A DNA stretch of 64,000 bases, taken from the sequence record OZ196285.1; one strand, 5' to 3'. Shown here in pieces: positions 3,914-45,756 of this stretch. Positions within the stretch are counted from its first letter, which is position 1. The number at the start of each line of letters is the position of its first letter. A model generated the notes under the pieces. The model had not been told where the DNA came from and searched no databases. It saw nothing but the letters and a program-made list of their open reading frames with translations. The position numbers and the translations under genes are program-made.

Positions 3914-4414
3914 ATGTCACTTAATGTAGATAACATTAAAAGAGCTTTCAGTAATGGTGATTTCGCTCGTCCGAACTTGTTCGAAGTTGAAATTCCATAT
4001 CTGGGACAAAACTTTAAGTTTCAATGTCGTGCTTCTGCAATGCCACCGGGTAGTGTCGAGAAGCTAGAAGTTTCTTATCAGAATCGTAAATACAACATCG
4101 CCGGCGATCGTACATTCGATGACTGGAACGTGACTGTTTACAACGATGAAAATCACGACATTCGTAGAGCTATTTTAGCATGGCAAGCACGTGCAGTTGG
4201 CTTAGGTAAAGAAGTAACAGGCGAGACGCCAGATCAGTACAAGCGTACTGGTACTATCACTCAGCTTGATCGTAACGGTGAGCCTACTACTAGCGCAACT
4301 GTTTTCGGTATATTCCCGACGGTAGTCGGCGAGGTTGCGCTTGATTGGGATTCAAACAACGAAATCCAAACGTTTGAAGTAACATTCAGCCTAGACTACT
4401 TCACAGTCGAATAA
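3914..4414 (+). CDS. 19: Tail tube protein
   Basis: ARPNLFEV, AGDRTFDDWNVT, WDSNNEI motifs; position after gene 18. Confidence 0.96.
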   Translation: MSLNVDNIKRAFSNGDFARPNLFEVEIPYLGQNFKFQCRASAMPPGSVEKLEVSYQNRKYNIAGDRTFDDWNVTVYNDENHDIRRAILAWQARAVGLGKEVTGETPDQYKRTGTITQLDRNGEPTTSATVFGIFPTVVGEVALDWDSNNEIQTFEVTFSLDYFTVE

Positions 4415-4461: not shown

Positions 4462-6009
4462 ATGTTAGAATTTATGAAATTCTGGACGAAAGAAGAAGAG
4501 CAAGATGTAACTGATATTCAGAAGAATCCGGTGCGCTCATTTTCAGCTCCTGATAACGTAGATGGCGCTAAGGATATTCATACTAACTTACTCGCGCCTC
4601 AGATGGGTAATCAGTTCATTCCTAGTGATATGAATCAAGAAGGGACGGTTCCGATTAAAGAACTGATCTCGGCATATCGCGGGCTGGCAGAATATCACGA
4701 AGTCGATGATGCAATTCAAGAAATCGTCGATGAAGCTATCGTTTACGAAAACGATAAAGAAGTTGTCTGGTTGAACCTAGACAACACTGATTTTTCAGAA
4801 AAAATCAAATCAAGAATAAACGAAGAATTTGACACTGTGGTATCACTTTTGCAAATGCGTAAGCACGGTTACAAGTGGTTCCGAAAATGGTATGTCGATT
4901 CGCGCATTTACTTTCACAAGATTCTTGACAAAGAAAACAACATTGTTGAACTGCGCCCACTAGACCCGATGAAAATGGAACTAGTTCGCGAAGTTCAGAA
5001 AGAAACTATTGATGGCGTAGAAGTGGTTAAAGGCACACTTGAGTATTACGTTTATCGACAGTCTGATTACAAAATGCCTAGTTGGATGGACACGAGTTCG
5101 CGATCGCAGACATCATTCAGGATCCCGAAAGAAGCGATTGTATTCGCTCATAGTGGTTTGATTCGTGGTTGTTCTGAGTCTCAGACAATTATTGGATATC
5201 TAGACCGAGCTATAAAGCCCGCTAACCAACTTAAAATGCTGGAAGATGCACTTGTCATCTATCGTCTAGCACGAGCGCCTGAGCGTCGCGTATTCTACGT
5301 CGATGTTGGTAACTTGCCTACTCAGAAAGCACAACAATATGTAAACGGTATCATGCAGAACGTCAAGAACCGTCTTGTATACGACACTAACACCGGTTCA
5401 GTGAAAAACACGACCAATGCTATGTCTATGCTAGAAGATTACTATCTGCCGCGTAGAGAGGGTTCTAAGGGTACTGAAGTAAGTACGCTACCAGGTGGTC
5501 AGTCACTAGGTGATATTGAAGATGTGATGTACTTCAACCGTAAATTGTACAAAGCGATGCGTATCCCGACTTCTCGTGCAGCGTCAGAAGATCAATCTGG
5601 TGGTATTAACTTCGGTGGTGGCGCAGAAATTTCGCGTGATGAATTGAAATTCACTAAATTCGTCAAGCGTTTGCAGACTCGTTTCGAAACTGTAATCACC
5701 GATCCGCTGAAACATCAGCTAATCGTAAACAATGTGATTACCGAAGAGGAGTGGGATGCGAATCACGAAAAACTGTACGTTGTGTTTAACCAAGACTCAT
5801 ACTTTGAAGAATCTAAGGAATTAGAGATTCTAAATAGTCGTATGAATGCAATGCGAGACGTGCAAGAATATGCCGGCAAATATTACAGTCATAAATACAT
5901 TCAGAAGAACATTTTGCGTTTGTCTGACGATCAAATCACTTCTATGCAAGAAGAGATCGACGAAGAAGACACTAACCCAAGATTTCAATCAGATGACCAC
6001 GGATTTTAG
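4462..6009 (+). CDS. 20: Portal protein
   Basis: YRLARAPERRVFYVDVGNLP, LEDYYLPRREG motifs. Confidence 0.97.
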   Translation: MLEFMKFWTKEEEQDVTDIQKNPVRSFSAPDNVDGAKDIHTNLLAPQMGNQFIPSDMNQEGTVPIKELISAYRGLAEYHEVDDAIQEIVDEAIVYENDKEVVWLNLDNTDFSEKIKSRINEEFDTVVSLLQMRKHGYKWFRKWYVDSRIYFHKILDKENNIVELRPLDPMKMELVREVQKETIDGVEVVKGTLEYYVYRQSDYKMPSWMDTSSRSQTSFRIPKEAIVFAHSGLIRGCSESQTIIGYLDRAIKPANQLKMLEDALVIYRLARAPERRVFYVDVGNLPTQKAQQYVNGIMQNVKNRLVYDTNTGSVKNTTNAMSMLEDYYLPRREGSKGTEVSTLPGGQSLGDIEDVMYFNRKLYKAMRIPTSRAASEDQSGGINFGGGAEISRDELKFTKFVKRLQTRFETVITDPLKHQLIVNNVITEEEWDANHEKLYVVFNQDSYFEESKELEILNSRMNAMRDVQEYAGKYYSHKYIQKNILRLSDDQITSMQEEIDEEDTNPRFQSDDHGF

Positions 6010-6027
6010 AGATAGAGGTAACATAGT

Positions 6028-6195
6028 ATGAGCTTAGAAACAATGGTAGCAGCATCACGCGAAGGCAAACTTGCAGATTTCGAACAACAGTTCACGCAAG
6101 AAATTGGCTCACGCGTTGCAGCACGCATTGAAGACATGAAGCAAGAGCTTGGTCGTTCAATTCGCGCAGATGGTGAAGTTCCTAAGGAGGACTAG
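6028..6195 (+). CDS. 67: Prohead core protein (55 aa, absent from the ORF track)
   Basis: ATG 6028 with GAGG RBS to TAG 6195, MSLETMVAASREG...; syntenic between genes 20 and 68. Confidence 0.8.
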   Translation: MSLETMVAASREGKLADFEQQFTQEIGSRVAARIEDMKQELGRSIRADGEVPKED

Positions 6196-6196
6196 C

Positions 6197-6703
6197 ATGT
6201 CGCTGACTTCAGAACAAAAACAAATAATCGATGAGCAAATTCAAGCTCACTTGAAAGATGGCGATACGCAGAGCGATGTGGCAAACATCATTAGCGTTGT
6301 TACCGGTGGTAAAGAGCTATCAGAAGACGAAACAGAGCTTTATGCATACATCATGCAGCAAGCGACGCTTCATCTTGACGAAGGTGTGTTTGAAGAGCTT
6401 GACTACGAACTAGACGAAGCAGAACTTGAATTAGCTGAAGAGTTTCAAATCAATGAAAAATTGGTTAAGAGCGTTTCGGTTGCTAATCGCAAGGCTGGTG
6501 GTAGCTTAGTTACTAAGAAAAAAGATCGAGCAACTCGTAAGCGCAGAGCGTCGCAAACTACGGGTCTAAGTAAATCAAAGAGACAAAAAACTGCACGTAA
6601 GGCGGCAAAAACTCGCAAACGTCAGAGAGGCACGAGCGTTGAGCGTAAAGCGAAAAAATCTCGCGCTAAGTCTATGAAGAAACGTAAACAAATGGGGCTT
6701 TGA
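6197..6703 (+). CDS. 68: Prohead core protein
   Basis: Acidic N-terminus and very basic C-terminus; AGGAGG RBS supports ATG 6197; synteny. Confidence 0.85.
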   Translation: MSLTSEQKQIIDEQIQAHLKDGDTQSDVANIISVVTGGKELSEDETELYAYIMQQATLHLDEGVFEELDYELDEAELELAEEFQINEKLVKSVSVANRKAGGSLVTKKKDRATRKRRASQTTGLSKSKRQKTARKAAKTRKRQRGTSVERKAKKSRAKSMKKRKQMGL

Positions 6704-6705
6704 TT

Positions 6706-7341
6706 ATGGAATTATTAATCGAAACTTGGGGTGTTTCTAGCGGTCTCGCTGAATCACTCGGAGAAAAGCCTCTTGTTGAAGCGAAGCTACCGCTAGAAAA
6801 GGGTGGCGACTTGTATATTGAGGGCATATTCATGCAATCGAATGTCGTAAACCGCAATGGTCGCAGATATCCGAAAAAAGTCATGGAGAATGCTGTATCT
6901 AAATACATGCAAGAACAAGTCAACACGAATCAAGCGTTGGGCGAATTGAATCACCCTAGCCGTTCGAATGTCGATCCTGCTGAAGCTGCAATTCGAATTA
7001 CTGAGTTGTGGTGGGATGGTGACAACGTAATGGGGAAAGCTATCGTACTAAATACACCGAAGGGACAAATTGTTCGAGGTCTAATCGAAGGTGGTTGGGT
7101 CCCGGGCGTGAGTTCAAGAGGTCTTGGTTCAGTTAAGCAAGTTGACGGCATTAACGAAGTCACAGATTTTCGTCTGACAGTCGGAGTTGATGTAGTATGG
7201 GGCCCGAGTGCTCCGAGTGCTTACGTTAAACCAGTAACTGAGTCAAATGAAGCTGCTAAATCAGCAAAAACAGTAGAAATTACCGAAAGTAATGACGCTG
7301 AATTCGCGAAACTAGCGGAAACGTTAAAAACTCTCTTATAA
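6706..7341 (+). CDS. 21: Prohead protease
   Basis: NRNGRRYP, GELNHP, GVSSRGLGS motifs. Confidence 0.96.
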   Translation: MELLIETWGVSSGLAESLGEKPLVEAKLPLEKGGDLYIEGIFMQSNVVNRNGRRYPKKVMENAVSKYMQEQVNTNQALGELNHPSRSNVDPAEAAIRITELWWDGDNVMGKAIVLNTPKGQIVRGLIEGGWVPGVSSRGLGSVKQVDGINEVTDFRLTVGVDVVWGPSAPSAYVKPVTESNEAAKSAKTVEITESNDAEFAKLAETLKTLL

Positions 7342-8303: not shown

Positions 8304-9845
8304 ATGAACCTAACTGAAAAATGGAAAGACTTGCTTGAAGCAGACGGTGCGGAAATGCCTGAGATTGCAACTGCAACTAAGCAAAAAATCATGTCGAAAA
8401 TCTTTGAAAACCAAGATCGCGACATCAACAAAGATCCAATGTACCGTGATCCACAACTTGTTGAAGCTTTCAACGCCGGTCTTAACGAAGCGGTAGTAGA
8501 TGGCGACCACGGTTCTGTTGCGAACATCGCAAGCGGTCAAACAACTGGTGCTGTAACAAACATCGGTCCTACTGTAATGGGTATGGTTCGTCGTGCTATT
8601 CCTCAGCTTATCGCTTTCGATATCGCTGGTGTTCAGCCAATGACTGGTCCAACGTCTCAAGTGTTCACTCTTCGTAGTGTTTACGGTAAAGACCCGCTAA
8701 CTGGTAAAGAAGCATTCCATCCTGTTCATCAGGCAGATGCATCATTCTCTGGTCAAGGCGCTGCTTCTGCAATTGCAGATCTACCAACAGATTCGACGGA
8801 AATTTCTACTCCGTACAAAGCGACTGTTACTACCGACGGTGGTACTGAAGACCTACGACACTTCCTAGCACTTACTACTGACGCTGTTGTAGCGACAACT
8901 GGTGTTGTGACTGCTGACGAATACAAATCTCTTGTAATCGGTGGCAAGCTAGTAGAAGTTGATGCAGGTATGGCAACAAGCCAAGCTGAACTACAACAAA
9001 ACTTCAACGGTTCTGCCGACAACGAATGGAACGAAATGTCATTCCGTATCGACAAGCAAGTAGTCGAAGCGAAATCTCGCCAATTGAAAGCTCAATACTC
9101 AATCGAGCTTGCGCAAGATTTACGTGCTGTACACGGTATCGATGCAGATGCTGAACTAAGCGGAATTCTAGCGAACGAAGTAATGGTTGAACTTAACCGT
9201 GAAATCGTTAACCTTGTTAACTCTCAAGCTCAAATCGGTAAGTCTGGCTGGACTAAAGGTGCGGGTTCTGCGGGTGTATTTGACTTCTCTGACGCAGTTG
9301 ATGTGAAAGGCGCACGTTGGGCTGGTGAAGCTTACAAAGCTCTATTGATCCAAATCGAAAAAGAAGCAAACGAAATCGGTCGTCAAACTGGTCGTGGTAA
9401 CGGTAACTTCATCATTGCATCACGCAACGTAGTTTCTGCACTTTCAATGACTGATACTCTAGTTGGCCCTGCTGCACAAGGTCTTCAAGATGGCTCTATG
9501 AATACTGAAACAAATCAAACTGTTTTTGCTGGTATTCTAGGCGGTCGCTTCAAAGTGTACATTGACCAGTACGCAGTGAATGACTACTTCACAGTAGGCT
9601 TCAAAGGCGGTACTGAAATGGACGCGGGTGTGTTCTACTCACCGTACGTACCTCTGACTCCACTACGTGGTTCAGACAGCAAAAACTTCCAACCTGTAAT
9701 TGGTTTCAAAACTCGTTACGGCGTTCAAGTTAACCCGTTTGCTGATCCAGATGCTTCAGTAGACAAAATTGGTTCAGGTGCTCCGGTAGCTGCATCAATG
9801 GGTAAAAACTCTTACTTCCGTCGCGTATTCGTAAGCGGCCTATAA
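8304..9845 (+). CDS. 23: Major capsid protein
   Basis: VRRAIPQLIAFDIAGVQPM, KSRQLKAQYSIELAQDL, FQPVIGFKTRYG. Confidence 0.98.
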   Translation: MNLTEKWKDLLEADGAEMPEIATATKQKIMSKIFENQDRDINKDPMYRDPQLVEAFNAGLNEAVVDGDHGSVANIASGQTTGAVTNIGPTVMGMVRRAIPQLIAFDIAGVQPMTGPTSQVFTLRSVYGKDPLTGKEAFHPVHQADASFSGQGAASAIADLPTDSTEISTPYKATVTTDGGTEDLRHFLALTTDAVVATTGVVTADEYKSLVIGGKLVEVDAGMATSQAELQQNFNGSADNEWNEMSFRIDKQVVEAKSRQLKAQYSIELAQDLRAVHGIDADAELSGILANEVMVELNREIVNLVNSQAQIGKSGWTKGAGSAGVFDFSDAVDVKGARWAGEAYKALLIQIEKEANEIGRQTGRGNGNFIIASRNVVSALSMTDTLVGPAAQGLQDGSMNTETNQTVFAGILGGRFKVYIDQYAVNDYFTVGFKGGTEMDAGVFYSPYVPLTPLRGSDSKNFQPVIGFKTRYGVQVNPFADPDASVDKIGSGAPVAASMGKNSYFRRVFVSGL

Positions 9846-12913: not shown

Positions 12914-13435
12914 ATGGGACAATTGAAAACGCATGTAGACTCACTGACTAAATCTGATTTAGATGAGTTTGCGCGAGAATTTTACGGGATTGAACTTGAT
13001 CGTCGTAAATCAAAGGGGGCTATGACTAAAGCTCTTATCGACCAGGCAGAAACAACTATGCCTCTTAAACCTCTCCCATGGGAAGAGTTATTAGTTGAGA
13101 CTTCGACCGAAGATGAGATAGCCGCGGTAGTTGAAAATGAAACGCTAAAATCTACTGTAGAAGTCGAGACACCTAAAGCTGCTCGTGTCGAAGTTGAAGT
13201 TGAAGAGAATTTCGTTCCGCTTCGTACTCCGTTCAAGCGTGGAGGCGAGCCGTTTCTGACTATCACATTGAGCGCGGTAGAATTTTACCAAGCATTGAAA
13301 GCTGGCACTGTATCACTGAGTGACGTGCCAAAGGCTGACGAACGCGCTGTTAAAACGATTCTATACTACGTAGAGCGTGACGGCGAGTTGTTAGTCCGTG
13401 AAACACGTAACAGTCGCTTTATCGAACTTAAATAG
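12914..13435 (+). CDS. inh: Inhibitor of prohead protease (Inh-like)
   Basis: C-terminal YYVERDGELLVRETRNSRFIELK resembles the T4 Inh C-terminus. Confidence 0.8.
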   Translation: MGQLKTHVDSLTKSDLDEFAREFYGIELDRRKSKGAMTKALIDQAETTMPLKPLPWEELLVETSTEDEIAAVVENETLKSTVEVETPKAARVEVEVEENFVPLRTPFKRGGEPFLTITLSAVEFYQALKAGTVSLSDVPKADERAVKTILYYVERDGELLVRETRNSRFIELK

Positions 13436-18270: not shown

Positions 18271-18717
18271 CTACCCCAAGTAAATAAAGCCGCTTGTTAG
18301 GCTATCACGCACAAGCAATTTGCCGTTACGCTCAACCCAGAAAGCCATTGTCTGCAATTCGTGTGTATCACGACGACCAATATTGTAGTCATGAATCGTA
18401 TCATGCGTGATCAATTGATATAATTCGTCGCCACGACGATATGAAGGTGACCATTTCGGTTTGAATGCCGGTACAACGCTCTCAGCCGCAACGTCAGCGA
18501 CTTCAATCACTTCAGCGACAGATTCACCGTCTTCTGTGATTTCTTCAACGTCAGCGTCATCTAGAGCGATTAACGAAACGTCGATATCGTCTTCGTGCTC
18601 AAGTATCTGAGCGATGATTTTGCCTTTGGTCGTGTGTTTGTCAACGTCGATGTAGTTCGCTTCTGCGAATTCGATCACGCCTCGTTTAGTCAACTCTTTT
18701 AAGTGTGTTTCGATCAT
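18271..18717 (-). CDS. Inh-like paralogue (syntenic with T4 inh next to uvsW)
   Basis: AFWVERNGKLLVRDSLTSGFIYL; N-terminus similar to 12914-13435. Confidence 0.65.
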   Translation of the reverse strand: MIETHLKELTKRGVIEFAEANYIDVDKHTTKGKIIAQILEHEDDIDVSLIALDDADVEEITEDGESVAEVIEVADVAAESVVPAFKPKWSPSYRRGDELYQLITHDTIHDYNIGRRDTHELQTMAFWVERNGKLLVRDSLTSGFIYLG

Positions 18718-18959
18718 TTCAATTCTCCATCATAAGGAACACTAACCCAAACGTTCTGATCGCAGTCGAAAAATGAAATCTGAGTTTTGTCAGTCTCGTT
18801 TAGTCTAAGCGCAGCACGATTCGCATCGAGTTTAGGGATGTAGTGCATGTCTAGTGTCGCGTTGTATGAGACATCATCGATTGATATTCGATGTAATCCC
18901 GTTTTAAGTTCGTCAAATAATGCCGTTTGCTTGACAAATCTCGTGGCTCGAAAACTCAT
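18714..18959 (-). CDS. Small hypothetical protein, possible WYL/SH3-like fold
   Basis: NATL...ISFFDCDQNVWVSV pattern. Confidence 0.45.
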   Translation of the reverse strand: MSFRATRFVKQTALFDELKTGLHRISIDDVSYNATLDMHYIPKLDANRAALRLNETDKTQISFFDCDQNVWVSVPYDGELK

Positions 18960-18972
18960 ATTTTCAACCTCT

Positions 18973-18999
18973 TATAAATACATGTATATCATATTTAGA
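18973..18999. promoter_or_regulatory. Face-to-face late promoters
   Basis: TATAAATA (+) at 18973-18980 and TCTAAATA (-) at 18992-18999. Confidence 0.65.
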
Positions 19000-19021
19000 C
19001 AATATTACATGAGAGAAATAC

Positions 19022-20551
19022 ATGACAACTGATATCAAAATTGAGTATTACGACGAAAGTTATGTCAGAGTCGTGGCGGACCCGAGTATAACACATGAAA
19101 TGATCGATTACTTCTCATTTCTGACAGACGGATACAAATTTAACCCTAAATTCAAAATGGGTATTTGGGACGGCAAGATTCGACTAATGACCTATCAGGG
19201 TCTATTGCCATACGGCTTGGTTGGACAAGCGCGTGCATTCGCATCGAACATGATGTACACAATCGAAACTGACGAGCAAATCGATCCGGTTGAGTTGATT
19301 TCACGTGAAGAATTCGACGTGTGGATTAAATCAATTGACATCTACGCAGGTTCGAATAAGATTGAGCCGTACTGGTATCAAGCTGATTCAATTTTTCATG
19401 GCATCAATAATCAACATAGTCTGTTGAATCTACCGACATCAGCCGGTAAGTCGCTTATTCAGTCCCTAATCACTAAGTGGTTCTTAGACAATCAAGAAGA
19501 ACAACAGAAAGTTCTAGTTATCGTTCCGACGACTGCATTAGTTCAGCAAATGCGCGATGACTTCTTGGACTATCGCTTGTTTGAACATGATGACATCTAT
19601 CAGATTCGCGGTGGCGTTGATCGTGATGCAATCGGTGATGCTCAAATCGTTGTATCGACTTGGCAGTCAGCAGTTAAGCAGCCTAAAGAATGGTTCGACC
19701 AGTTCGGTATGCTTCTAGTCGATGAGTGTCACTTGGCAACGGGTAAATCACTTGACGGCATTATCAAGAAAATGACGAACTGTGATTTCAAGATTGGCTT
19801 GACTGGCTCGTTACGTGACGGCAAAGCGAACATTCTTCAATACGTTGGCTCATTCGGTGACATCTTCAGACCTGTATCTACAGCTCAGTTGATGGAAGAA
19901 GGCGCAGTGACTGACTTGAAGATCAACTGCTTGATGCTTGAGTACCCTCAGCCGCTACGCGATGAAATGAAAGGTGCGTCGTATCAAGAAGAAATGAAGT
20001 TCATTCTTGAGAACAAGCATCGCAATCGATACTTGATTAAGCTTGCGTATCAATTGAGCGCGAAACGCGGTGAAAACACGCTGTTGCTGTTCAAGAACAT
20101 CAAGCACGGCAAGTTGCTTTACGAAGCCCTGAAAACGATTTACGACCCTGAGAAAGTGTTTTACGTATCAGGCGAGACGAAGACAGACGACAGAACAGCA
20201 GTTAAGAAAATCGCTGAAGACATTGACGGTGCGATCATCGTTGCGTCATACGGTGTATTCTCGACTGGTATCAGCATCAAGAAATTGCATAATGTAATCT
20301 TCGCGCATCCCACGAAGTCAAAAATTATCAATTTACAGAGTATTGGTCGTATTCTTCGTAAGCACGGTTCGAAAGTTACTGCGAAGCTGTTCGATATCAT
20401 CGACAACTTGGGTATCAAGCCGAAACGCAAGAACGCTAAGAAGCCTTATACGCACATTAACTATACTATGAAACATGGTATGGCACGTATTGAACTCTAC
20501 AATCAAGAAGAATTCAAATACGCGGTTAAGAAAGTTGACTTAGCCGGTTAG
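19022..20551 (+). CDS. uvsW: UvsW SF2 helicase
   Basis: LPTSAGKS, VDECH, QSIGRILR motifs. Confidence 0.96.
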   Translation: MTTDIKIEYYDESYVRVVADPSITHEMIDYFSFLTDGYKFNPKFKMGIWDGKIRLMTYQGLLPYGLVGQARAFASNMMYTIETDEQIDPVELISREEFDVWIKSIDIYAGSNKIEPYWYQADSIFHGINNQHSLLNLPTSAGKSLIQSLITKWFLDNQEEQQKVLVIVPTTALVQQMRDDFLDYRLFEHDDIYQIRGGVDRDAIGDAQIVVSTWQSAVKQPKEWFDQFGMLLVDECHLATGKSLDGIIKKMTNCDFKIGLTGSLRDGKANILQYVGSFGDIFRPVSTAQLMEEGAVTDLKINCLMLEYPQPLRDEMKGASYQEEMKFILENKHRNRYLIKLAYQLSAKRGENTLLLFKNIKHGKLLYEALKTIYDPEKVFYVSGETKTDDRTAVKKIAEDIDGAIIVASYGVFSTGISIKKLHNVIFAHPTKSKIINLQSIGRILRKHGSKVTAKLFDIIDNLGIKPKRKNAKKPYTHINYTMKHGMARIELYNQEEFKYAVKKVDLAG

Positions 20552-37994: not shown

Positions 37995-38408
37995 ATGAAC
38001 TACATCAACTTGACTACGCTATCTGTTCTAAACTTTGAAGACGCGCAAATCTCAATTGCAAACGGTCACGAAGTTGAATCACGATGGGATTGGAAAACAC
38101 TTGAGCGTGTTACTGAAGTTTGCAACATGCTTGACCAAGAGCTTTACATGGTTGAGGATTCTGGTGATGGCTGTTCACCGCGCTTCGATATCGTTCGTAA
38201 GCCTCGCGTTGGTGACAAAGTGAGCTACTGTTTCAACGGCGATTCTCGCCCTGACGGTGAAATCAAGAGCATTTCTAAGACAATGAAGCTAATCACAACG
38301 ACTACTGGTAGCAAATACTACCGTCGCGGTGAGTCTGCAACTTGGAAACGTCACGGTACATGGTCGCTTTCATTCGGTCACAATCACACGACTAACGAGG
38401 AATTCTAA
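37995..38408 (+). CDS. Early hypothetical protein
   Basis: Strong RBS, first gene after the promoter. Confidence 0.75.
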   Translation: MNYINLTTLSVLNFEDAQISIANGHEVESRWDWKTLERVTEVCNMLDQELYMVEDSGDGCSPRFDIVRKPRVGDKVSYCFNGDSRPDGEIKSISKTMKLITTTTGSKYYRRGESATWKRHGTWSLSFGHNHTTNEEF

Positions 38409-38665
38409 TGAGCAGACCACTATTTTTGTTCCCTGTAATCGCAGCAGTGTTATTTGGTGCTATTATTTTCATCGTGTATCAAGATGAGCAAGCATCGCGT
38501 GAAGCGCCTTTCGACTCAACGAAAACTGAAGTCATTCACCCTAGAAGCAACTTTCAGATCGATAAGATGTGTCTCGATGGTGTGCTGTATTGGGACGGGT
38601 ATCGAGTTCTAACGCCAGTGATTGACGCTGAAACACTAACATTTACTAGATGTGAGGCAGAATAA
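38408..38665 (+). CDS. Hypothetical membrane-anchored protein
   Basis: N-terminal hydrophobic helix, two Cys. Confidence 0.7.
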   Translation: MSRPLFLFPVIAAVLFGAIIFIVYQDEQASREAPFDSTKTEVIHPRSNFQIDKMCLDGVLYWDGYRVLTPVIDAETLTFTRCEAE

Positions 38666-39258
38666 TGCCAATATATTTCCCTGAAAATGTCAAAAAGTAC
38701 AAAGATGAGACTCGTCAAGTTGAAGCAGGTGATCAACTTGTTCTGCAATATAGCATTGGTACGTCACTAACGACTGCTGTTACTCTGAGAGTGGTCGAAG
38801 ACACCAAAGAACATGCGATATTTCTAGCGATAGACCACAAAAACGGTACGTCATTCTTTCATAACAAGACTGCAAACGAGTTCTATCGCAACGGTATGCG
38901 TGTAGATATTCACGGTGTTCATGTGTATGGTCACGACTGTGAAATCGAGTTCGATGAAAACTTCAACATGGTGACCACTGTTCAAGTCGCAGCCGACGAA
39001 GAAACAATGTATCGAAAAGTTCGAGCTGACGACGTGGTTAAGGTTCAACATCATGGTGATCCTGTGGTATGGGATGGTAAGTGTATTTTTGTAAGCTCTG
39101 ACTGTATTGTTGTGGTGAGTCAAAATATCCCATTCACGTTTTCTCGCCCTGCTTTACTGAAGAAATATTTCGTACACGACTCTAGTGGTAATAATGGTGC
39201 TCGTATTGCTCAAGATCTTTTTGTTGGTATCCCACGAGCAGGTTCGGTATTAGAATGA
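38665..39258 (+). CDS. Hypothetical protein
   Basis: Stop/start-coupled ORF. Confidence 0.7.
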   Translation: MPIYFPENVKKYKDETRQVEAGDQLVLQYSIGTSLTTAVTLRVVEDTKEHAIFLAIDHKNGTSFFHNKTANEFYRNGMRVDIHGVHVYGHDCEIEFDENFNMVTTVQVAADEETMYRKVRADDVVKVQHHGDPVVWDGKCIFVSSDCIVVVSQNIPFTFSRPALLKKYFVHDSSGNNGARIAQDLFVGIPRAGSVLE

Positions 39259-39722
39259 AGTATCAGAAAATAAACGAAGTTGACTTCGCAAACGGCGAGG
39301 GTGTTCGATTGAGCATCTTCGTTTCTGGCTGTGAGCATCGCTGTGCGGGCTGCTACAACGAATCGACGTGGGATGCGAACGATGGTATCGATTTCACGGA
39401 AGACACGCTCAGAGACATTCTGACGAGCTTAGAGAATCACGACGGTCTGAGTCTATCGGGTGGTGACCCTCTTCATCCGCAAAACCGCGACACCATTCTT
39501 GAGATCTGCAAAGCTGCAAAAGCACGCTACCCTGACAAAGATATTTGGCTTTGGAGTGGTTATAAGCTAAAAGCTGTTTATCATCTTGAAATTATGAATT
39601 ATATTGATGTCTTCATCGACGGGAAATATAAACGTCATCAGCCTACCATGAAAGCATGGCGAGGTTCTGAAAATCAAATCATGTATAGGAGAGTAGACGA
39701 TGAGTTGCGTCTGGATCACTAG
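39255..39722 (+). CDS. nrdG: Class III RNR activase (radical SAM)
   Basis: FVSGCEHRCAGCYN, SLSGGDPL, IDGKY. Confidence 0.95.
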   Translation: MKYQKINEVDFANGEGVRLSIFVSGCEHRCAGCYNESTWDANDGIDFTEDTLRDILTSLENHDGLSLSGGDPLHPQNRDTILEICKAAKARYPDKDIWLWSGYKLKAVYHLEIMNYIDVFIDGKYKRHQPTMKAWRGSENQIMYRRVDDELRLDH

Positions 39723-40224
39723 TGACTTGCACTTAGGTCACAAAAACATCGGGAAGTTTCGAGACGACATCGAAACGCCTGAAGACAACACAAAATGGAT
39801 TACCGACTTCTGGTTAGCAAACGTCAAAAAGCGCGACACTGTGATCATGCTTGGTGACACTGCGTTTACTGAAGACGCCATCGACATCATCGCAGATCTG
39901 CCGGGTTATAAGAAGCAGTTCGGTGGAAATCACGATGACTTGCCAGTCACAAGCTACATGCGTGCATTTGATGTCATTCGTGGCTGTGAGAAGTACAAGA
40001 AGCTTGGTTGGTTAAGTCACTTCCCGCTTCATCCAGACGAGCTGCGCGGTCACTTCAGCATTCACGGTCACGTGCATTATCAAACGATTGATGATTATCG
40101 TTACGTCAACGTGTGCTGCGACAACTTGCAACGTAACATTGGCCAGCCAATGATTCGACTCACTGATTTGCGTCAGTTGCTCGATATTCGTCGTGAAACA
40201 AAAGAAGTATCATACGACTTCTAA
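39700..40224 (+). CDS. Calcineurin-like metallophosphoesterase
   Basis: SDLHLGH, LGD, GNHD, HGHVH. Confidence 0.9.
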   Translation: MSCVWITSDLHLGHKNIGKFRDDIETPEDNTKWITDFWLANVKKRDTVIMLGDTAFTEDAIDIIADLPGYKKQFGGNHDDLPVTSYMRAFDVIRGCEKYKKLGWLSHFPLHPDELRGHFSIHGHVHYQTIDDYRYVNVCCDNLQRNIGQPMIRLTDLRQLLDIRRETKEVSYDF

Positions 40225-40234
40225 TGGGTCTATC

Positions 40235-40282
40235 TGCATGAACATCTAAATACAAGCATGTATTAAGGTTGGTGTTCATGCA
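40235..40282 (+). promoter_or_regulatory. RBS-sequestering hairpin containing a late promoter
   Basis: TGCATGAACA (40235-44) pairs with TGTTCATGCA (40273-82); TCTAAATA at 40245-52; ATG at 40285. Confidence 0.7.
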
Positions 40283-40284
40283 CT

Positions 40285-41130
40285 ATGATAGATGTTTTAC
40301 TGAGATATAATGTCAAGATCACGAATAGCCGAAAGCTCACTGTGTACACAGATGAAAATCGCTTGAATCTTATCGTTGAACTGGCAAACGAGCTAGAGGG
40401 CGAATACGTTAAGTGTGACCCTGGTAGTTCAATTGGTTGTATACAGATGGATAATTGCAGAGTATACGTCAAACCAATATCTAATCCCGGCATCGAGAAT
40501 GAACACAATTTCTTTTCTATTGTAAAGCAACATATTGATTCTGGTTGTAATCGGATTAAGATTGGTAGGCGCGTAATAAAGAATGTTCAGTCAATTGAAA
40601 TGACAGGGCATGATACGAAAAACAACAAAAAAGCCGATATGGTCATCAAGACTGCATCAGGCGATTTCCCGATTTCGATTAAAAAGTCAAACGCTGAACG
40701 TTGGGCAAGTACAGACGTGATTCATGGTACTGAAGCTTGCAAGCTGCTCGAACAAATGGTCTCTGATAAAACAGTTGAACTATCTGATTGGTCGGACGAC
40801 GGTAAAGTGAAGCGACTTAGCCAGCCAATAGCTCGTCGGCTGCGATTAGATGAAATAAATCAGGTCGTATTCGGTTCAGATATTCTTGGTGATGGTCTTG
40901 TGATCGTCAACAGCTTTACGTTAGATGATTTCGTGTTCAACAACGATACTTTACATATTAGCGGTGAAGTGCTGTATTCGTCGAAAGATGTTGCAAACAC
41001 AATTTACCACCCGTATATGATGATTAGAAATGACGCTTGTCGTCGTAGTAAGGCTTTGCCTTATGGCGTGCGAGTTGAAGTTGTATTCGAGTCACGAATT
41101 ACGAAAAACACGATTGTTTACGAGGAGTAA
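40285..41130 (+). CDS. Putative PD-(D/E)xK nuclease-fold protein
   Basis: KKADMVI...PISIKK motif. Confidence 0.5.
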   Translation: MIDVLLRYNVKITNSRKLTVYTDENRLNLIVELANELEGEYVKCDPGSSIGCIQMDNCRVYVKPISNPGIENEHNFFSIVKQHIDSGCNRIKIGRRVIKNVQSIEMTGHDTKNNKKADMVIKTASGDFPISIKKSNAERWASTDVIHGTEACKLLEQMVSDKTVELSDWSDDGKVKRLSQPIARRLRLDEINQVVFGSDILGDGLVIVNSFTLDDFVFNNDTLHISGEVLYSSKDVANTIYHPYMMIRNDACRRSKALPYGVRVEVVFESRITKNTIVYEE

Positions 41131-41133
41131 CCA

Positions 41134-41955
41134 TTGAATATTAAAGATAGAATCGAAGAGCTTATCGGGTCTATTCACAATTGCAGCACTAAAGATGGCG
41201 TTTGTGAGATCGAGAAGCTATACGGTCAGAAGAAAAAAGAGCTTGGCGCGAACATTACTCCGATGATGGATATTCGTGTTCGTGATGCTATTCGCGGCAA
41301 ATACGATATGTTCGACGCAGAAGCAGCCGAGAAGAAAGAAATGGCAGCACAGAAGAAAACTGAAACAGCCGCAGCAGCAATTGCCGGTAAATTCGACGAG
41401 GGTTTGCACGTTGTTGATGAAAAGTCGTTCTTCTTGCATGAGACTGTAGTCAATGAATCTGCAATCGACGCTATGTGTATCATGGACGTTGACGCAAGCA
41501 TTCCTACTATCGGTCACAAAGAGCTGTCAAAATCGCTTTCAGAAGCTTGTACGCACGTAGGTGCTCAGGGTCGAATCGTTGTTGGTGAAGTGGTCAACAA
41601 GCTATTGCCAATCGAAGAGCGCGTCGAAATTTTCGAATCGTTCTCTGACGTTGACGTTAAAGCCAAAGGCAACATGTTTGCTGAAGTTGAGACTCTAATT
41701 CAACGCGGTGTAACTCGCATGTTTGCGTTTGTTGAATCTGAACGAGTGGCAGAGTATCGTCGTCTAGGTCGTCACTTCTTACGTGTTGGTGGGCTACGCT
41801 TTGAAATCGTCGAAGTGAGCAACAAAGTACCATCTAGTGTTGTTGAGAATCTGATTCGCGACGACAATTTGGAAGAGTTTGTTGAGCATATGCCGATGCG
41901 CATGTACGAAGCTGAGAAGATCTTTGATCGTCAGCTTGAACGTTTGTTGGGGTAA
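41134..41955 (+). CDS. Cytidylyltransferase-like (HIGH-motif) nucleotidyltransferase, divergent
   Basis: PTIGH motif, C-terminal SSVVENLIRDDNLEEF; TTG start with GAGGAG RBS. Confidence 0.55.
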   Translation: MNIKDRIEELIGSIHNCSTKDGVCEIEKLYGQKKKELGANITPMMDIRVRDAIRGKYDMFDAEAAEKKEMAAQKKTETAAAAIAGKFDEGLHVVDEKSFFLHETVVNESAIDAMCIMDVDASIPTIGHKELSKSLSEACTHVGAQGRIVVGEVVNKLLPIEERVEIFESFSDVDVKAKGNMFAEVETLIQRGVTRMFAFVESERVAEYRRLGRHFLRVGGLRFEIVEVSNKVPSSVVENLIRDDNLEEFVEHMPMRMYEAEKIFDRQLERLLG

Positions 41956-41958
41956 TCT

Positions 41959-42450
41959 ATGAGCAATACTGCGAAACGAGGTGCTGACGGCTTCTATGCC
42001 TTGCGTCTGTCTACTCTGTTGCACATGCGATTCGACCGATGGGAAGCGTACAAGCTAGGTATCATCGATAAAGATGGTAAAAAGCTGCGCGATGCTGAAT
42101 CAGCGAAAGAGAAAGCAAACTGGACGCTGTTTCACGTTACAGTGTGTAACATCAAGAAAATGATTCACCTTTTACCGGGTGGCAAGACTGCACTCGATTA
42201 CGGTGCATCATATCTGTTGATGCTTGAGCTTCAGAAAGAGTACGACCTTGGTGACGAGTTCATCAATGAAGTGCGCAGACTTGAAGAAGCAGTAGTGGCA
42301 GGTGATGCGGGCGACGGAAGTGGCTCGCCAGAGTCAATTGCTACTGGTGAAACTACGGGCGCGGTGACTAACATCGGTGGCGCTGCAAAGCCAGATTCAG
42401 ACAAGAAAAAGAAAAAGAAGCGTTTGAAGAAATTCAGACACTTTGACTAA
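41959..42450 (+). CDS. gp61.1-like conserved protein with a gp23 N-arm-like segment
   Basis: AYKLGIIDKDG; EAVVAGD...TTGAVTNIG; upstream of the primase gene. Confidence 0.7.
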   Translation: MSNTAKRGADGFYALRLSTLLHMRFDRWEAYKLGIIDKDGKKLRDAESAKEKANWTLFHVTVCNIKKMIHLLPGGKTALDYGASYLLMLELQKEYDLGDEFINEVRRLEEAVVAGDAGDGSGSPESIATGETTGAVTNIGGAAKPDSDKKKKKKRLKKFRHFD

Positions 42451-42453
42451 CTA

Positions 42454-42479
42454 AATGCCTCGTTTTCGGGGCTTTTTTA
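42454..42479 (+). terminator. Probable terminator
   Basis: GCCTCG-TTTT-CGGGGC followed by a T tract. Confidence 0.6.
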
Positions 42480-42530
42480 TGTTTATTGTTCGTGAAACTC
42501 GTGTGATAATGCTATCACGGAGGTTATATT

Positions 42531-43589
42531 ATGCAAATTCTGATTGATATACAATACGCAAAGATGCTTCAGCATCGATTGCAGTTACCTAAGGTGCACA
42601 GTCACCGACCTTTCAAAATAAATGCTCGTTGTCCCGTATGCGGTGACTCAAAGAAGAACAAATACAAAACACGTTTCTGGATTAACGAAGTTAAGACGAA
42701 AGCGGGTGAAGTACATTTGCGCTGTTCATGTTGGAACTGCGACTTGAATGTGTCTTTGTTTCAGTTCTTAAAAGATCACGAGCCGTCTCTATTCTCACAA
42801 TATCGTGTAGACTTATTCAAAGAACGCAATTCACGCGAACGTAAAGAACGTGCACCTGAGCCAGTCGAAGAGAAAAAAGAAGCTGTAGCTATCGACAAAG
42901 AGCAAGAAGAGCAGTTGTTCTATAACATCAATGCGCTTAAAGAAGGGCATGTGATGCACAAGTACCTTGACTCGCGTCAAATCCCTCGTGACAAGTGGCA
43001 TTTGCTCGGCTTTACTCGTGGATGGACTCAAATGGCAAAGACTCTCAGACCTGATTTGTATGAGGGAGAGATTCGCCAAGATCACCCGCGTCTCGTAATA
43101 CCGATTTACAGCAAAGATGGCTTGCTTGCAGTACAAGGTCGAGCACTGACAAACAAGCACGCACAGCGTTACATGACGATTAAAATCGACGAAGATTTCA
43201 ACAAAATCTACGGCACTGAGCGCATCAACGAAGCCGACCCCGTAATTTACGTTGAGGGCCCAATTGATAGTTTATTCCTCTATAATTGCTGTGCTATAGT
43301 AGGTGGACAAGTTAGTCCGAAGAACGCGCCTTATGCAGGCAATCGCATTTGGGCTTTAGATAATGAGCCTCGCCACCCCGATGTTGTCAAGCGTCTTCAG
43401 ACGTTGATTAAAGCAGGTGAGCGAGTTGTAATATGGGATAAGCTCCCACCGGTAATCGCTAATAAGAAAGACATTAACGATTTCGTAAAAGCTGGTGTAT
43501 CTGCTGAGTACATTCAGCAATACATTTATGACAACGCAGTCAGTGGTCTGGTTGCGACAAATAGATTAAACAGATGGAAGAAAATTTAA
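42531..43589 (+). CDS. 61: DNA primase
   Basis: RCPVCGDS..CSCWNC zinc finger, RLVIP, YVEGPIDSLF, DINDF. Confidence 0.96.
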   Translation: MQILIDIQYAKMLQHRLQLPKVHSHRPFKINARCPVCGDSKKNKYKTRFWINEVKTKAGEVHLRCSCWNCDLNVSLFQFLKDHEPSLFSQYRVDLFKERNSRERKERAPEPVEEKKEAVAIDKEQEEQLFYNINALKEGHVMHKYLDSRQIPRDKWHLLGFTRGWTQMAKTLRPDLYEGEIRQDHPRLVIPIYSKDGLLAVQGRALTNKHAQRYMTIKIDEDFNKIYGTERINEADPVIYVEGPIDSLFLYNCCAIVGGQVSPKNAPYAGNRIWALDNEPRHPDVVKRLQTLIKAGERVVIWDKLPPVIANKKDINDFVKAGVSAEYIQQYIYDNAVSGLVATNRLNRWKKI

Positions 43590-44086
43590 TGCATATCATT
43601 TACCTACCGCACTACAAAGAAAACAAAGAACTTGGTCTTGACGCTATCGAGCCACTGAAAGTAACAGACCCTGATAATGCGGGCATTGATTTACGCGCTG
43701 CAATCGAAGAGTCAATAGAGCTACCACCGGGTGCTTCAGTTGTAATTCCGACTGGTGTCAAGATTGACATCACATCGCATTCACTACACAATCATTTCAC
43801 CGATGTTGGTGTTTACGGCATGGCAGCTCCTCGTTCAGGTATGGGCTTCAAACACTTTGTGCGTTTGGCAAACACGATTGGCATTATCGACGCGAACTAT
43901 CAAGGCGAGATCATGATCAAGCTTCGCAACGAAGGTGAAAACATCGTTACTATCGAGCGCGGTGATCGTTTCTGTCAGCTAATTTTCCAACTGTACGTAA
44001 AAGGCGTGACATTTGAAGAAGTCGACCGATTCGAAACTGAATCAGAACGAGGTGCAAGTGGCTTTGGCAATAGCGGGGTGAAATAA
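43574..44086 (+). CDS. dut: Trimeric dUTPase
   Basis: AGIDL, PRSGMG, GIIDANYQGEI, ERGASGFGNSG. Confidence 0.95.
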   Translation: MEENLMHIIYLPHYKENKELGLDAIEPLKVTDPDNAGIDLRAAIEESIELPPGASVVIPTGVKIDITSHSLHNHFTDVGVYGMAAPRSGMGFKHFVRLANTIGIIDANYQGEIMIKLRNEGENIVTIERGDRFCQLIFQLYVKGVTFEEVDRFETESERGASGFGNSGVK

Positions 44087-44322
44087 TGCACACACCTATT
44101 TCTAAAACCGGTGAGCTTCTAGGGTCGATGCGTGCAATCGTGATTGACGAGCGCATTGAAAGTGCGCTTCGTTTTGACCTTACAAACGATCAAGAAATCA
44201 AACAGCGAATGATCAATTCGCGCAAAGCTACTCTTGGTGAGATACAAGATCAGCAGAACAAAATCAACCTGAAGCTCAAGCTTCTACATCAATTACTTGA
44301 CTTGAAAGGGGCTATTTTATGA
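44086..44322 (+). CDS. Hypothetical protein
   Basis: Coupled ORF, coiled-coil. Confidence 0.65.
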   Translation: MHTPISKTGELLGSMRAIVIDERIESALRFDLTNDQEIKQRMINSRKATLGEIQDQQNKINLKLKLLHQLLDLKGAIL

Positions 44323-45005
44323 GTAAGCCAATATACGACATTTTAATCGATTACGAGGGCTTTGACGTTACGCCTGAAGCTGCTGTAATCGAACTGGGTG
44401 CAGTTGAATTCGAACACGATTTCACAAAAGTTCCTGACTATCAAGATCTGGTGAAGAACTCATTCCGATGTAAGTTCGAGATCAAGCATCAGAAAGGTGT
44501 TCGCAGCATCAACAAAGCAACGGTCAAGTGGTGGTCTGAACAATCGAAAGAAGCGAAAGAGATTCTTATCCCGTCTATCTACGATGTGTCAGTCGAAGAA
44601 GGGCACAAGATGTTCATCGATTGGATTGAGAACAACACGCGTTATGACGGTCGTTCGCACTTCTACTGTCGTGGTAATAACTACGATATCCCGTTGATGG
44701 CTGACTGTTTCCGTTCTGAGGGGCTGCGTCATGCAATCATCGAGCGATTCTGGAAGTTCAGAGACGTTCGTACGCGAATCGAAGCACTAATGCTGCAACG
44801 TGATATGTGTAAAGTGCCAATCAAGCGCGACATGATGCCTGGGTTCGTGCATCACAATGGCGTACACGATTGCGCGAAAGATGTCATGATGCTTATCATG
44901 GCTGCACGATACGCACTGGAGCTTGAAGAGCTGCCAGAGAAAATGGAATGTCACGAAGTCTCGGTAGACTTTACTGACGAAGAAAAAGAGGAACTTGGTC
45001 TATGA
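44319..45005 (+). CDS. dexA: DEDD-family exonuclease A
   Basis: IDYE, CRGNNYDIP, HNGVHDCAKD. Confidence 0.9.
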   Translation: MSKPIYDILIDYEGFDVTPEAAVIELGAVEFEHDFTKVPDYQDLVKNSFRCKFEIKHQKGVRSINKATVKWWSEQSKEAKEILIPSIYDVSVEEGHKMFIDWIENNTRYDGRSHFYCRGNNYDIPLMADCFRSEGLRHAIIERFWKFRDVRTRIEALMLQRDMCKVPIKRDMMPGFVHHNGVHDCAKDVMMLIMAARYALELEELPEKMECHEVSVDFTDEEKEELGL

Positions 45006-45163
45006 TCATTGCTGTACACTTACTATCACAGGCAAAGCCTGTGATTCACGAGAACATCAAGAACGCTTACACGAAAGACGGCTTGTATTGCCTCATGCAG
45101 AAAGATGGTACTGTTTACAAGTACCCGCTGATTAATATTTTCCGCGTTATCGAAAATATGTAA
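45002..45163 (+). CDS. 53-aa hypothetical protein (absent from the ORF track)
   Basis: ATGA overlap with dexA, GAGGA RBS, MIIAVHLLSQAKPV... Confidence 0.65.
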   Translation: MIIAVHLLSQAKPVIHENIKNAYTKDGLYCLMQKDGTVYKYPLINIFRVIENM

Positions 45164-45170
45164 AAAACGG

Positions 45171-45214
45171 TTGCGTTGTTGATGCTGATCACCTATGATT
45201 CTTGCATCAACAAC
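45171..45214 (+). promoter_or_regulatory. Early promoter inside an 11-bp inverted repeat
   Basis: GG-TTGCGT-17-TATGAT; arms at 45175-85 and 45204-14. Confidence 0.7.
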
Positions 45215-45231
45215 AAAACGAGAACATTATC

Positions 45232-45756
45232 ATGCAACATACACTGACTTTTCAGCACATTTGGTTCAATTTGACAATCAAAGAACGCAAGCTTGTAGCA
45301 TTTGAAGAGCACGACAACTACGCGGGTGGTAATCTGATTATTCCTGACAACGTTGTGCCTGAGCATTGGGCTTATGATAACATCGCAAATCGTATTGAAT
45401 CGACGCGTGATCGTGTAGTTGTTCAGCAATTCTTATCAATGCACACTGACAATGGTTGGCGTAGTGTTGAAAACTACAAACAGTTTGTTCAGCCTTATGA
45501 AGGCGCAGCATATTCGATTTTCATGTGCGACACGACTCTGATCGTTCGTTCACGCGCTCTTCAAATGGAGCCGCAAGTAGACAACTTCTTTGAAAACGAA
45601 GTATGCAATCTAAATCGCGAGAAAATTGCAACTGAACTGTTAATGATGGTTAATCAAGGTATCGTTGATATCGAGACGCTTGGTGATAAGTCGTTCAACG
45701 ACATCGTGAATGAAAGCTTCACGACAATTAATGATGAAAAACACGGAGAATCGTAG
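45232..45756 (+). CDS. Early hypothetical protein
   Basis: GAGAACATTATCATG RBS. Confidence 0.7.
   Translation: MQHTLTFQHIWFNLTIKERKLVAFEEHDNYAGGNLIIPDNVVPEHWAYDNIANRIESTRDRVVVQQFLSMHTDNGWRSVENYKQFVQPYEGAAYSIFMCDTTLIVRSRALQMEPQVDNFFENEVCNLNREKIATELLMMVNQGIVDIETLGDKSFNDIVNESFTTINDEKHGES

Follow-up and report, generated by a model that had tools for sequence, protein, structure and literature searches.

This analysis concerns three adjacent genes, here called P1, P2 and P3, of F86, a KVP40-like, T4-type vibriophage, which lie in a window of 64,000 nucleotides from sequence record OZ196285.1 (the whole stretch of DNA that was analysed; all positions refer to it unless another phage is named). 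The best overall explanation, to which we give about half of our belief, is that the three genes form a late transcription unit whose last product, a member of the gp61.1 family, is targeted to the prohead and processed by a protease. The explanation starts from a stretch of P3 that resembles the part of the major head protein gp23 at which that protein is cut during maturation. The timing, targeting, cleavage and packaging, as well as every enzymatic activity of the three products, are what we infer, and they are worded accordingly below.

P3 (163 amino acids, 41959–42450, plus strand) matches the family phrog_2086 with E 8.5e-44 over residues 4–157, and tblastn retrieved gp61.1 matches in at least 601 phage records. 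The family has no recorded function, although the gene is conserved in the well-studied phage T4 and in hundreds of its relatives. At every locus inspected (Acj61, p000v, KP27, Ah1, PX29 and T4) gp61.1 stands just 5′ of primase gene 61, its closest named neighbour. Three parts can be told apart in the F86 protein: an N-terminal domain conserved across genera and bearing the motif AYKLGIID (residues 1–105, 41959–42273), a capsid-like segment in which a putative cleavage site, L-E-E↓A, precedes a look-alike of the gp23 N-fist (residues 108–140, 42280–42378), and a lysine-rich basic tail (residues 147–163, 42397–42447), all on the plus strand. An alignment of 10 members spanning phages of Vibrio, Acinetobacter, Escherichia, Klebsiella and Aeromonas has ten invariant positions (V113, G115, D116, G118, G122, I127, A128, G130, G134 and G140), and the shared block reads hydrophobic-x-E, V-A-G-D, I-A-x-G-x-T-x-G-A-V-T-x-x-G-P and then the lysine-rich tail. 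A K/R-rich tail followed the capsid-like segment in all members examined, while a tblastn search with the P3 tail alone retrieved Vibrio phages only, the query being too short and of low complexity. The N-terminal domain occurs alone in HTVC008M, the capsid-like part alone in T4 and both together in PX29, which indicates that the two are separable modules. The homologue in Pelagibacter phage HTVC008M (2001–2606 of the locus examined) is 201 residues long and joins an AYKLGIID-type N-terminal domain to an unrelated acidic C-terminal half, and T4 gene 61.1 (2967–3131, minus strand, of the T4 stretch examined) encodes a decapeptide, an N-fist look-alike and a K/E-rich tail.

The likeness to gp23 was found at several levels. 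Residues 108–140 of P3 align with residues 60–88 of the phage's own gp23 (8481–8567, plus strand, in the gene for the 513-residue major head protein at 8304–9845) with 21 of 33 positions identical and a pairwise E of 1e-7. A gp61.1 profile made from other phages, run against the 1047 six-frame segments of the window, gave E 1.7e-8 for F86 gp23 and 3.3 for the next best segment, and the reverse search within the window gave 4.5e-5 against 0.8 for the next; the match is thus reciprocal and unique within the window. Among 177,635 distinct PDB sequences, T4 gp23 was the sole significant match of the family profile (profile positions ~89–145 to residues 41–98 of the gp23 precursor, E 7.5e-7, as well as residues 3–33 of the mature chain), and T4 gp61.1 aligns with residues 57–93 of T4 gp23 at E 6e-9. 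A hydrophobic-x-E site stands in register with the gp23 site in all nine aligned C-terminal segments, and one member of the 10-sequence alignment deviates. In F86 itself, L108-E-E110↓A111 of P3 is in register with L-N-E↓A of F86 gp23 and L-T-E↓A of T4 gp23, and so carries a predicted site of the (L/I)-x-E form.

The protease gp21 removes the first 65 residues of gp23, whose N-terminal region before expansion is located within the prohead, where it probably sits on the scaffolding core (PMC9546572), and is later externalised, where it helps to bind Soc (PMC9546572); the N-fist comprises gp23 residues 66–91 (PMC7136217). By these boundaries the copied stretch runs from the last part of the propeptide across the maturation site and through the complete N-fist. 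The earlier note on this DNA, which had been written from the letters alone, described P3 as a mimic of the mature capsid arm: the match to gp23 was borne out, but the copy extends beyond the mature N-terminus and holds the cleavage site as well. We found no description of the likeness in the literature, in which the term “gp61.1” was met only in gene tables, and its sole earlier trace is a scattered mis-annotation as “major capsid protein”, a label that several records give to gp61.1. P3 is not the major capsid protein gp23, since it has 163 residues and lacks the HK97-fold body (A, P and I domains, ~450 residues).

At the nucleotide level the P3 segment and gp23 are identical at 31 of 45 and 19 of 27 positions (~69%), with many synonymous differences, and a recent DNA duplication from gp23 was rejected on these grounds. 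Within-genome co-variation of gp61.1 and gp23 was assessed in five phages over all permutations: own pairs scored 0.52 and permuted pairs 0.50, with 10% of the permutations reaching the observed value, and ongoing concerted evolution was dropped for lack of such a signal. Phage D479 was left out of this pairing, since its “major head protein” beside gp55 is not a true gp23. This gene of D479 (95–1015 of the locus examined) has a counterpart in phage 6E35.1a (VP6E351A_0100), each being an additional “major head protein” gene beside gp55 with a short product of ~306 amino acids (32 kDa), and the 6E35.1a product is abundant in the virion proteome (90 and 145 counts; PMC12028318 Table S4).

A second line of evidence comes from T4, whose gp61.1 begins with ten residues that are identical to those of the internal proteins IPII and IPIII at eight positions, with the first seven identical to IPI; the decapeptide ends in I-x-E. 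In the internal proteins this decapeptide is the capsid-targeting sequence (CTS), which loads them into the scaffolding core (PMC3012670). In pairwise alignment the T4 gp61.1 decapeptide falls on the gp23 residues just before the gp23 cleavage site, and from these two observations we propose that gp61.1 gains entry to the prohead as a mimic of the gp23 segment that faces the scaffold. The gp23-like stretch would take gp61.1 into the assembling prohead, gp21 would cut the F86 protein after L-E-E (residue 110), and the resulting basic, N-fist-like peptide of ~53 residues would be retained with the DNA inside the head, as are the internal proteins of T4. Taken together, the sequence comparisons suggest that the head takes up gp61.1 and that the protein is cut inside it. 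Two genes in the head-gene region of the window (12914–13435 and 18271–18717) are annotated as prohead protease inhibitor (Inh-like).

Published mass spectrometry of virions of phage 6E35.1a, whose homologues share 87% (P1), 81% (P2) and 77% (P3) protein identity with those of F86, is consistent with this proposal. Its protein list gives 11 and 24 counts for the P3 homologue and 7 and 19 for that of P2 (PMC12028318 Tables S4 and S8), values comparable to the 17 and 28 of the head protease and the 20 and 14 of a scaffold protein (PMC12028318). P2 too, through its homologue, thus seems to be associated with the virion of this close relative. The earlier note had the module “probably packaged or acting at packaging”, of which packaging agrees with this list for P2 and P3 but not for P1, whose homologue is unlisted.

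The transcription of the three genes was assessed from promoter-like and terminator-like sites. The late-type octamer TCTAAATA (40245–40252, plus strand) has one mismatch to the T4-type TATAAATA and ends 33 nt before the start of P1. The window holds 8 copies of TCTAAATA, counted as sequence matches, and four of these are intergenic, 23–48 nt 5′ of the genes for the tail tube (3891) and the gp34 tail fibre (28441) and of two other minus-strand genes (16726 and 18999). The canonical TATAAATA stands before the tail sheath, gp22, gp23 and uvsW genes of the window. One 63-nt gap (18959–19022) carries divergent octamers, TCTAAATA on the minus strand (18999) and TATAAATA on the plus strand (18973, before uvsW). 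KVP40 and R10Z retain TCTAAATA 41 nt 5′ of their P1 homologues; EniLVp02, a distant Vibrio phage, carries the canonical TATAAATA at the equivalent place, 36 nt 5′ of its own homologue, and D479 has GATAAATA. At the other end, a hairpin with a 6-bp stem (five G-C pairs) and a 4-nt loop, followed by TTTTTT, resembles an intrinsic terminator (42457–42478, plus strand, with the hairpin at 42457–42472) and is the sole terminator-like site on the plus strand within 38000–45500. A 30-codon ORF (open reading frame) annotated in the record at 42455–42547 runs across this hairpin into the first part of the primase gene, and is probably no real gene. The late-promoter variant and the terminator that the earlier note had proposed have thereby gained in weight, and the promoter-like octamers are good circumstantial support for late transcription of the three genes. 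Early read-through is also likely, because no terminator separates them from the genes upstream. We therefore picture one transcription unit with its own late-type promoter, probably supplemented by upstream read-through and ending at the terminator before the primase gene.

The three ORFs are separated by 3-nt gaps on the plus strand and are the same as those annotated in OZ196285.1; they follow uvsX-40-41-nrdD-nrdG-phosphoesterase and precede primase (61), dUTPase and dexA, and their 2.2-kb region shares 76–81% nucleotide identity with KVP40-like Schizotequatroviruses. The tight ORFs, the terminator, the flanking genes and all three protein motifs are present as the earlier note described them.

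Several observations weigh against a late, head-targeted gp61.1. In T4, Acj61, p000v and KP27 no late-promoter octamer stands directly 5′ of gp61.1, and in T4 the 61.1 transcript was classed as early and its protein went undetected (PMC9697503 Table S2); the transcripts of ipII and ipIII were likewise classed as early (PMC9697503 Table S2). F86 P3 has neither a CTS-like N-terminus nor an (L/I)-x-E site near it, and a comparison of the N-termini of F86 head-region proteins, P1 and P3 gave no CTS-like consensus. Since the N-terminal targeting peptide is absent, we claim only that F86 P3 may work like the internal proteins by way of its internal site. The P1 homologue is absent from the 6E35.1a virion protein list (PMC12028318), and the particles of that study were precipitated with polyethylene glycol (PEG), with SSB, dUTPase, thymidylate synthase and ligase also listed at low counts (PMC12028318). 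Given the PEG preparation and these replication enzymes, carry-over is possible, and the virion listing lends support without settling the matter. The gp61.1 gene of Aeromonas phage Ah1 is preceded, ~24 nt 5′ of position 3998, by a hairpin of the terminator type and then CATAAATA, which hints that gp61.1 may own a late-type promoter outside the Vibrio phages too.

The first gene of the unit encodes P1 (281 amino acids, 40285–41130, plus strand; phrog_12709), for which the earlier note had suggested a nuclease on the basis of a short motif. By an exhaustive profile search the P1 family numbers 531 representative clusters, of which 246 scored below 1e-30, and is thus large, mostly metagenomic and made up of proteins ~300 residues long. 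In an alignment of 140 homologues no variation was met at E73, D118, K133, F196, G197 or D199, and next to none at K116 and S131; the motifs are K116-A-D118 and I-S-I-K-K (130–134). The AlphaFold2 model is very confident, with a predicted local distance difference test score (pLDDT) of 95.3, and runs from a helix (68–85) through three strands (101–106, 119–123 and 127–133) to a second helix (144–160) and further strands, an order that in the predicted secondary structure corresponds to the alpha-beta-beta-beta-alpha-beta core of the PD-(D/E)xK superfamily. The model places E73 on the helix; D118 opens one of the strands, and S131-x-K133 lies on the strand after it. A Foldseek search of the predicted viral structures in BFVD returned the chlorovirus restriction enzyme CviJI (E 1.6e-8), the chlorovirus nickase Nt.CviQII (1.6e-7) and a further chlorovirus (PBCV) endonuclease (8.9e-6), together with P1 homologues from Stenotrophomonas and Synechococcus phages. 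On the grounds of this fold match, the invariant E/D/K residues and the helix-strand core we read P1 as a restriction- or nicking-endonuclease-like protein of the PD-(D/E)xK kind, which upholds the nuclease-like call of the earlier note at the level of a model. P1 would most likely cut or nick DNA at short sites. In the relative 6E35.1a, ~15% of deoxyguanosine is replaced by dPreQ1 (PMC12028318), and because this phage group swaps part of its guanine for a 7-deazaguanine, P1 would be expected to act on unmodified DNA; that dPreQ1 protects the phage from its own P1 is plausible.

This reading of P1 has its own difficulties. Sequence searches, with the single sequence and with the 140-sequence profile in the case of PDB, gave no Pfam, NCBIfam, PADLOC or PDB match, so that the sequence profiles point to no nuclease; matches to CarD and OSCP were dismissed as chance. 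Among solved PDB structures Foldseek returned nothing significant for P1, the best being BcnI at E 0.064, and the weak list of folds is led by the type II enzymes BcnI, HincII, EcoRV, MspI and HinP1I. The nuclease call is thus a comparison of one predicted structure with another, plus motifs. The third motif is S-x-K (S131) in place of (D/E)-x-K, and the invariant D199 might provide the missing acid. The contexts of the family differ: P1 homologues stand beside P2 in Vibrio phages and among auxiliary genes of the cyanophage type in others, and four metagenomic contigs showed different neighbours, with no conserved partner. On the supporting side, the P1-family gene of one metagenomic T4-like contig (5001–5900) lies within a late structural block, between the neck genes gp13-gp14 and gp15, terminase and sheath.

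P2 (273 amino acids, 41134–41955, plus strand) begins with a TTG codon after the Shine-Dalgarno sequence GAGGAG, and joins two domains whose fusion our searches found in Vibrio T4-like phages only. Residues 14–69 (41173–41340, plus strand) are a UvsW.1 domain (PF11637, E 7.1e-28), matched over the full profile (1–56) with 96.9 bits against a cut-off of 25, and the domain also matches T4 UvsW.1 (PDB 2jpn) at E 3.4e-4. In the AlphaFold2 model (pLDDT 87.7) a long helical stretch at the N-terminus gives way near residue 110 to an alpha/beta domain. The latter (residues ~110–273, 41461–41952, plus strand) has a nucleotidyltransferase fold like that of PPAT and NadD: Foldseek gave 47 matches to PDB at E ≤ 1e-3, those listed all being PPAT/CoaD, NadD, FAD synthetase or TmcAL, with a probability of 1.0 and template-modelling (TM) scores of 0.6–0.66 normalised to the target. 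The motif PTIGH (residues 124–128, nucleotides 41503–41517) follows the strand 113–119 and starts the helix 126–142, which is the place expected for (H/T)-x-G-H (T-I-G-H, 125–128). The earlier note had foreseen the HIGH-motif nucleotidyltransferase-like fold, and the PPAT, NadD and FAD synthetase matches agree with it, but it had missed the UvsW.1 domain; P2 is a UvsW.1 helical domain joined to a PPAT-like nucleotidyltransferase fold.

The nucleotidyltransferase-like domain may be inactive. The histidine of PTIGH (H128) is substituted in 2 of 11 P2 homologues, and the second motif, I-S-x-T-x-x-R, is degenerate in F86, where P-S-S-V-V-E-N-L-I-R stands at the equivalent place; the EniLVp02 homologue has the canonical I-S-A-T-R-M-R. 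No Pfam model (that for cytidylyltransferases included) or NCBIfam model matched the C-terminal domain at E ≤ 0.1, and because the family sequence model is unmatched we speak of a nucleotidyltransferase-like fold and not of a family member. The label “DNA helicase” or “ATP-dependent DNA helicase UvsW” that P2 carries is an annotation-transfer error, which was traced to an old fused T4 uvsW entry; neither Pfam nor fold comparison found a superfamily 2 (SF2) helicase domain in P2. The real uvsW of F86 is at 19022–20551 without a uvsW.1 alongside, and the sole UvsW.1 domain of the window is the one in P2, 21 kb away.

Our results do not support the claim of the earlier note that the three genes are one functional module. 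At the gp61.1 loci of Acinetobacter, Escherichia, Klebsiella and Aeromonas phages P1 and P2 have no counterpart, full-length P2 homologues are confined to Vibrio T4-like phages (only free UvsW.1 was found elsewhere), gp61.1 is widespread without the other two, and the P1 family occurs in other contexts. The statement in the note that proteins with the HIGH motif and with AYKLGIID stand side by side elsewhere among T4-like phages holds for Vibrio phages but not outside them. Within Vibrio phages the order P1-(X)-P2-gp61.1-gp61 is retained in three divergent lineages. The trio is not one evolutionary module: gp61.1 is ancient and tied to the primase gene, and P1 and P2 joined it in Vibrio phages only, taking their place after the nrd genes and before gp61.1. 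In EniLVp02 the gene that separates the P1 and P2 homologues (EniLVp02_0206, 5855–6937 of the locus examined) encodes a DUF6267 protein of 360 residues (Pfam E 7e-35), with a K-W-D-G stretch reminiscent of ligase-type nucleotidyltransferases. A hint of nuclease–nucleotidyltransferase pairing in Stenotrophomonas phages is weak. In Stenotrophomonas phage Moby the P1 homologue lies near a Hoc-like gene and a cytidylyltransferase-like gene, and the locus examined (4986–7193) encodes the P1 homologue, then a 268-residue unknown protein and then the 166-residue cytidylyltransferase-like protein, which aligns weakly with the P2-type domain in the register of the motif (E 0.011 to 0.16, marginal). Moby gp050 showed no similarity to P2 or to DUF6267. 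With the Moby similarity marginal and the neighbours in the metagenomic contigs different, we make no claim of a P1–nucleotidyltransferase system.

Other explanations of the gp23 likeness were weighed against head targeting. The protein could act in the cytoplasm as a counter-defence or regulatory protein, its imitation of gp23 occupying a host or phage factor that recognises new capsid protein; an immune protein that senses capsids would be one candidate, a protease or chaperone another. We consider this unlikely, but it draws on the surroundings of the gene: T4 61.1 lies in the interval between 41 and 61 by dmd, tifA (61.4) and adfA (61.2), an anti-toxin island whose other genes have been called “attractive anti-toxin candidates” (bioRxiv 2022.04.14.488369), and host systems that sense gp23 exist, e.g., Lit/Gol (PMC3014915). 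The early class of the T4 transcript and the want of an obvious late promoter at gp61.1 genes outside Vibrio phages point the same way. Against these stand the absence of any PADLOC or anti-defence family match, the counts of the P3 homologue in the virion proteome, which are near those of head core proteins, the internal-protein targeting peptide on T4 gp61.1 and the conserved register of the protease site. Very unlikely, in our view, is a structural role in which gp61.1 supplies the N-fist in trans, the cleaved peptide capping or cementing sites without a gp23 N-fist near the gp24 vertices or the portal. Such a role would suit the copied stretch, which covers the whole N-fist, and the architecture of the head: the N-fist touches four neighbouring subunits and helps to form the Soc site (PMC9958956, PMC9546572), the five subunits that face the portal have disordered N-fists (PMC7136217), and there is unassigned helical density under gp24*, which according to the authors may be digested core protein (PMC9546572). 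The N-fist look-alike, however, is glycine-rich and not helical, the lysine-rich tail fits contact with DNA or a place inside the head more readily than one on its outside, and own gp61.1–gp23 pairs co-vary no more than permuted ones (0.52 vs 0.50).

It could also be that the three genes are unrelated passengers on one transcript, with the gp23 likeness of P3 a relic, now without a role, of an old and partial gene duplication and P1 and P2 inactive remnants. That the trio is not co-conserved outside Vibrio phages, that the signature motifs of P2 are partly degenerate and that P1 has S-x-K for (D/E)-x-K would all fit, yet we give this explanation very little credence. The copied stretch is the best-conserved C-terminal part of gp61.1, with its ten invariant positions held across five host genera, and in T4 it makes up nearly the whole 54-residue protein; its nucleotide identity to gp23 is ~69%, with many synonymous differences. 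For the clade, the reported ratios of nonsynonymous to synonymous substitution rates (dN/dS) are low, at 3e-5 in P1 and 0.10 in both P2 and P3 (PMC12028318 Table S8), and the gene order from P1 to gp61 is kept in three divergent Vibrio lineages. Prohead targeting with processing is the reading that we prefer.

If the copied segment is both a ticket into the prohead and a substrate of gp21, gp61.1 would gain a concrete function, the inventory of the T4-type head would be joined by a processed basic peptide, and an origin would be suggested for the capsid-targeting peptide that is used in the engineering of T4 heads. A more far-reaching version joins these points: gp61.1, in its 601 or more records, would be an unrecognised class of head cargo whose address label copies the N-terminal segment of gp23 that faces the scaffold and is cut by the protease, the CTS would be a minimal imitation of the gp23 segment before the cleavage site, and the freed peptide would have a role of its own. 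We regard this combination as distinctly improbable when taken whole, and the same holds for the role that it would give to the peptide, which would either complete N-fist sites at the vertices or enter the next host together with the DNA as a decoy for capsid-sensing immunity. Apart from gp61.1, a large hypothetical family of marine T4-like phages (the 531 clusters of P1) gains a predicted fold like that of restriction or nicking endonucleases, and the annotation of KVP40-like phages can be corrected, as the “DNA helicase” P2 is instead a UvsW.1–nucleotidyltransferase fusion.

Among known systems, the closest counterpart of P3 is gp61.1 of T4 (NP_049649, 54 amino acids), of which P3 is a full-length family member at the same site 5′ of gene 61, and shares its V-A-G-D...T-G-A-V-T...G-P block and the lysine-rich tail behind it; the T4 protein differs in that it lacks the 105-residue N-terminal domain and begins with the capsid-targeting-like decapeptide. 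With gp23 of T4-like phages, ~35–55 residues of the P3 family align, the maturation site and the entire N-fist included, whereas the HK97-fold body is missing and the likeness ends exactly at the G-P that terminates the N-fist. With IPI, IPII and IPIII of T4, gp61.1 would share recruitment to the scaffold core, cleavage at (L/I)-x-E and a basic product kept in the head, but the putative site of the F86 protein is internal (residue 110) and not at residue 10, and its targeting element would be a copy of the pre-cleavage segment of the capsid protein. P1 resembles R.CviJI (P52283) and Nt.CviQII (Q0ZLZ5) in its predicted fold (probability 1.0, TM 0.46–0.55 normalised to the query) and in the catalytic-type residues E...D...x-K, invariant in its family; it differs in that the identity is 14% with no link at the sequence level, the comparison being of model with model, in its S-x-K third motif and in the lack of an adjacent methyltransferase gene in F86. 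The N-terminal domain of P2 corresponds to T4 UvsW.1 (PDB 2jpn, PF11637), which in T4 and in Aeromonas phages is a free protein of ~76 residues beside uvsW, whereas the F86 domain is fused and 21 kb away. The remainder of P2 (~110–273) shares with CoaD, NadD and FAD synthetase the fold and the T-x-G-H at the junction of strand 1 and helix 1, but differs in having no Pfam match, a variable histidine, a degenerate I-S-x-T-x-x-R and the fusion to UvsW.1, which is confined to Vibrio T4-like phages. Head cargo of the CTS type, restriction-like nucleases and HIGH nucleotidyltransferases are thus kinds already known, and their combination is new, as are the copy of the cleavage-site and N-fist segment of a capsid protein and the fusion of UvsW.1 to a nucleotidyltransferase-like domain.

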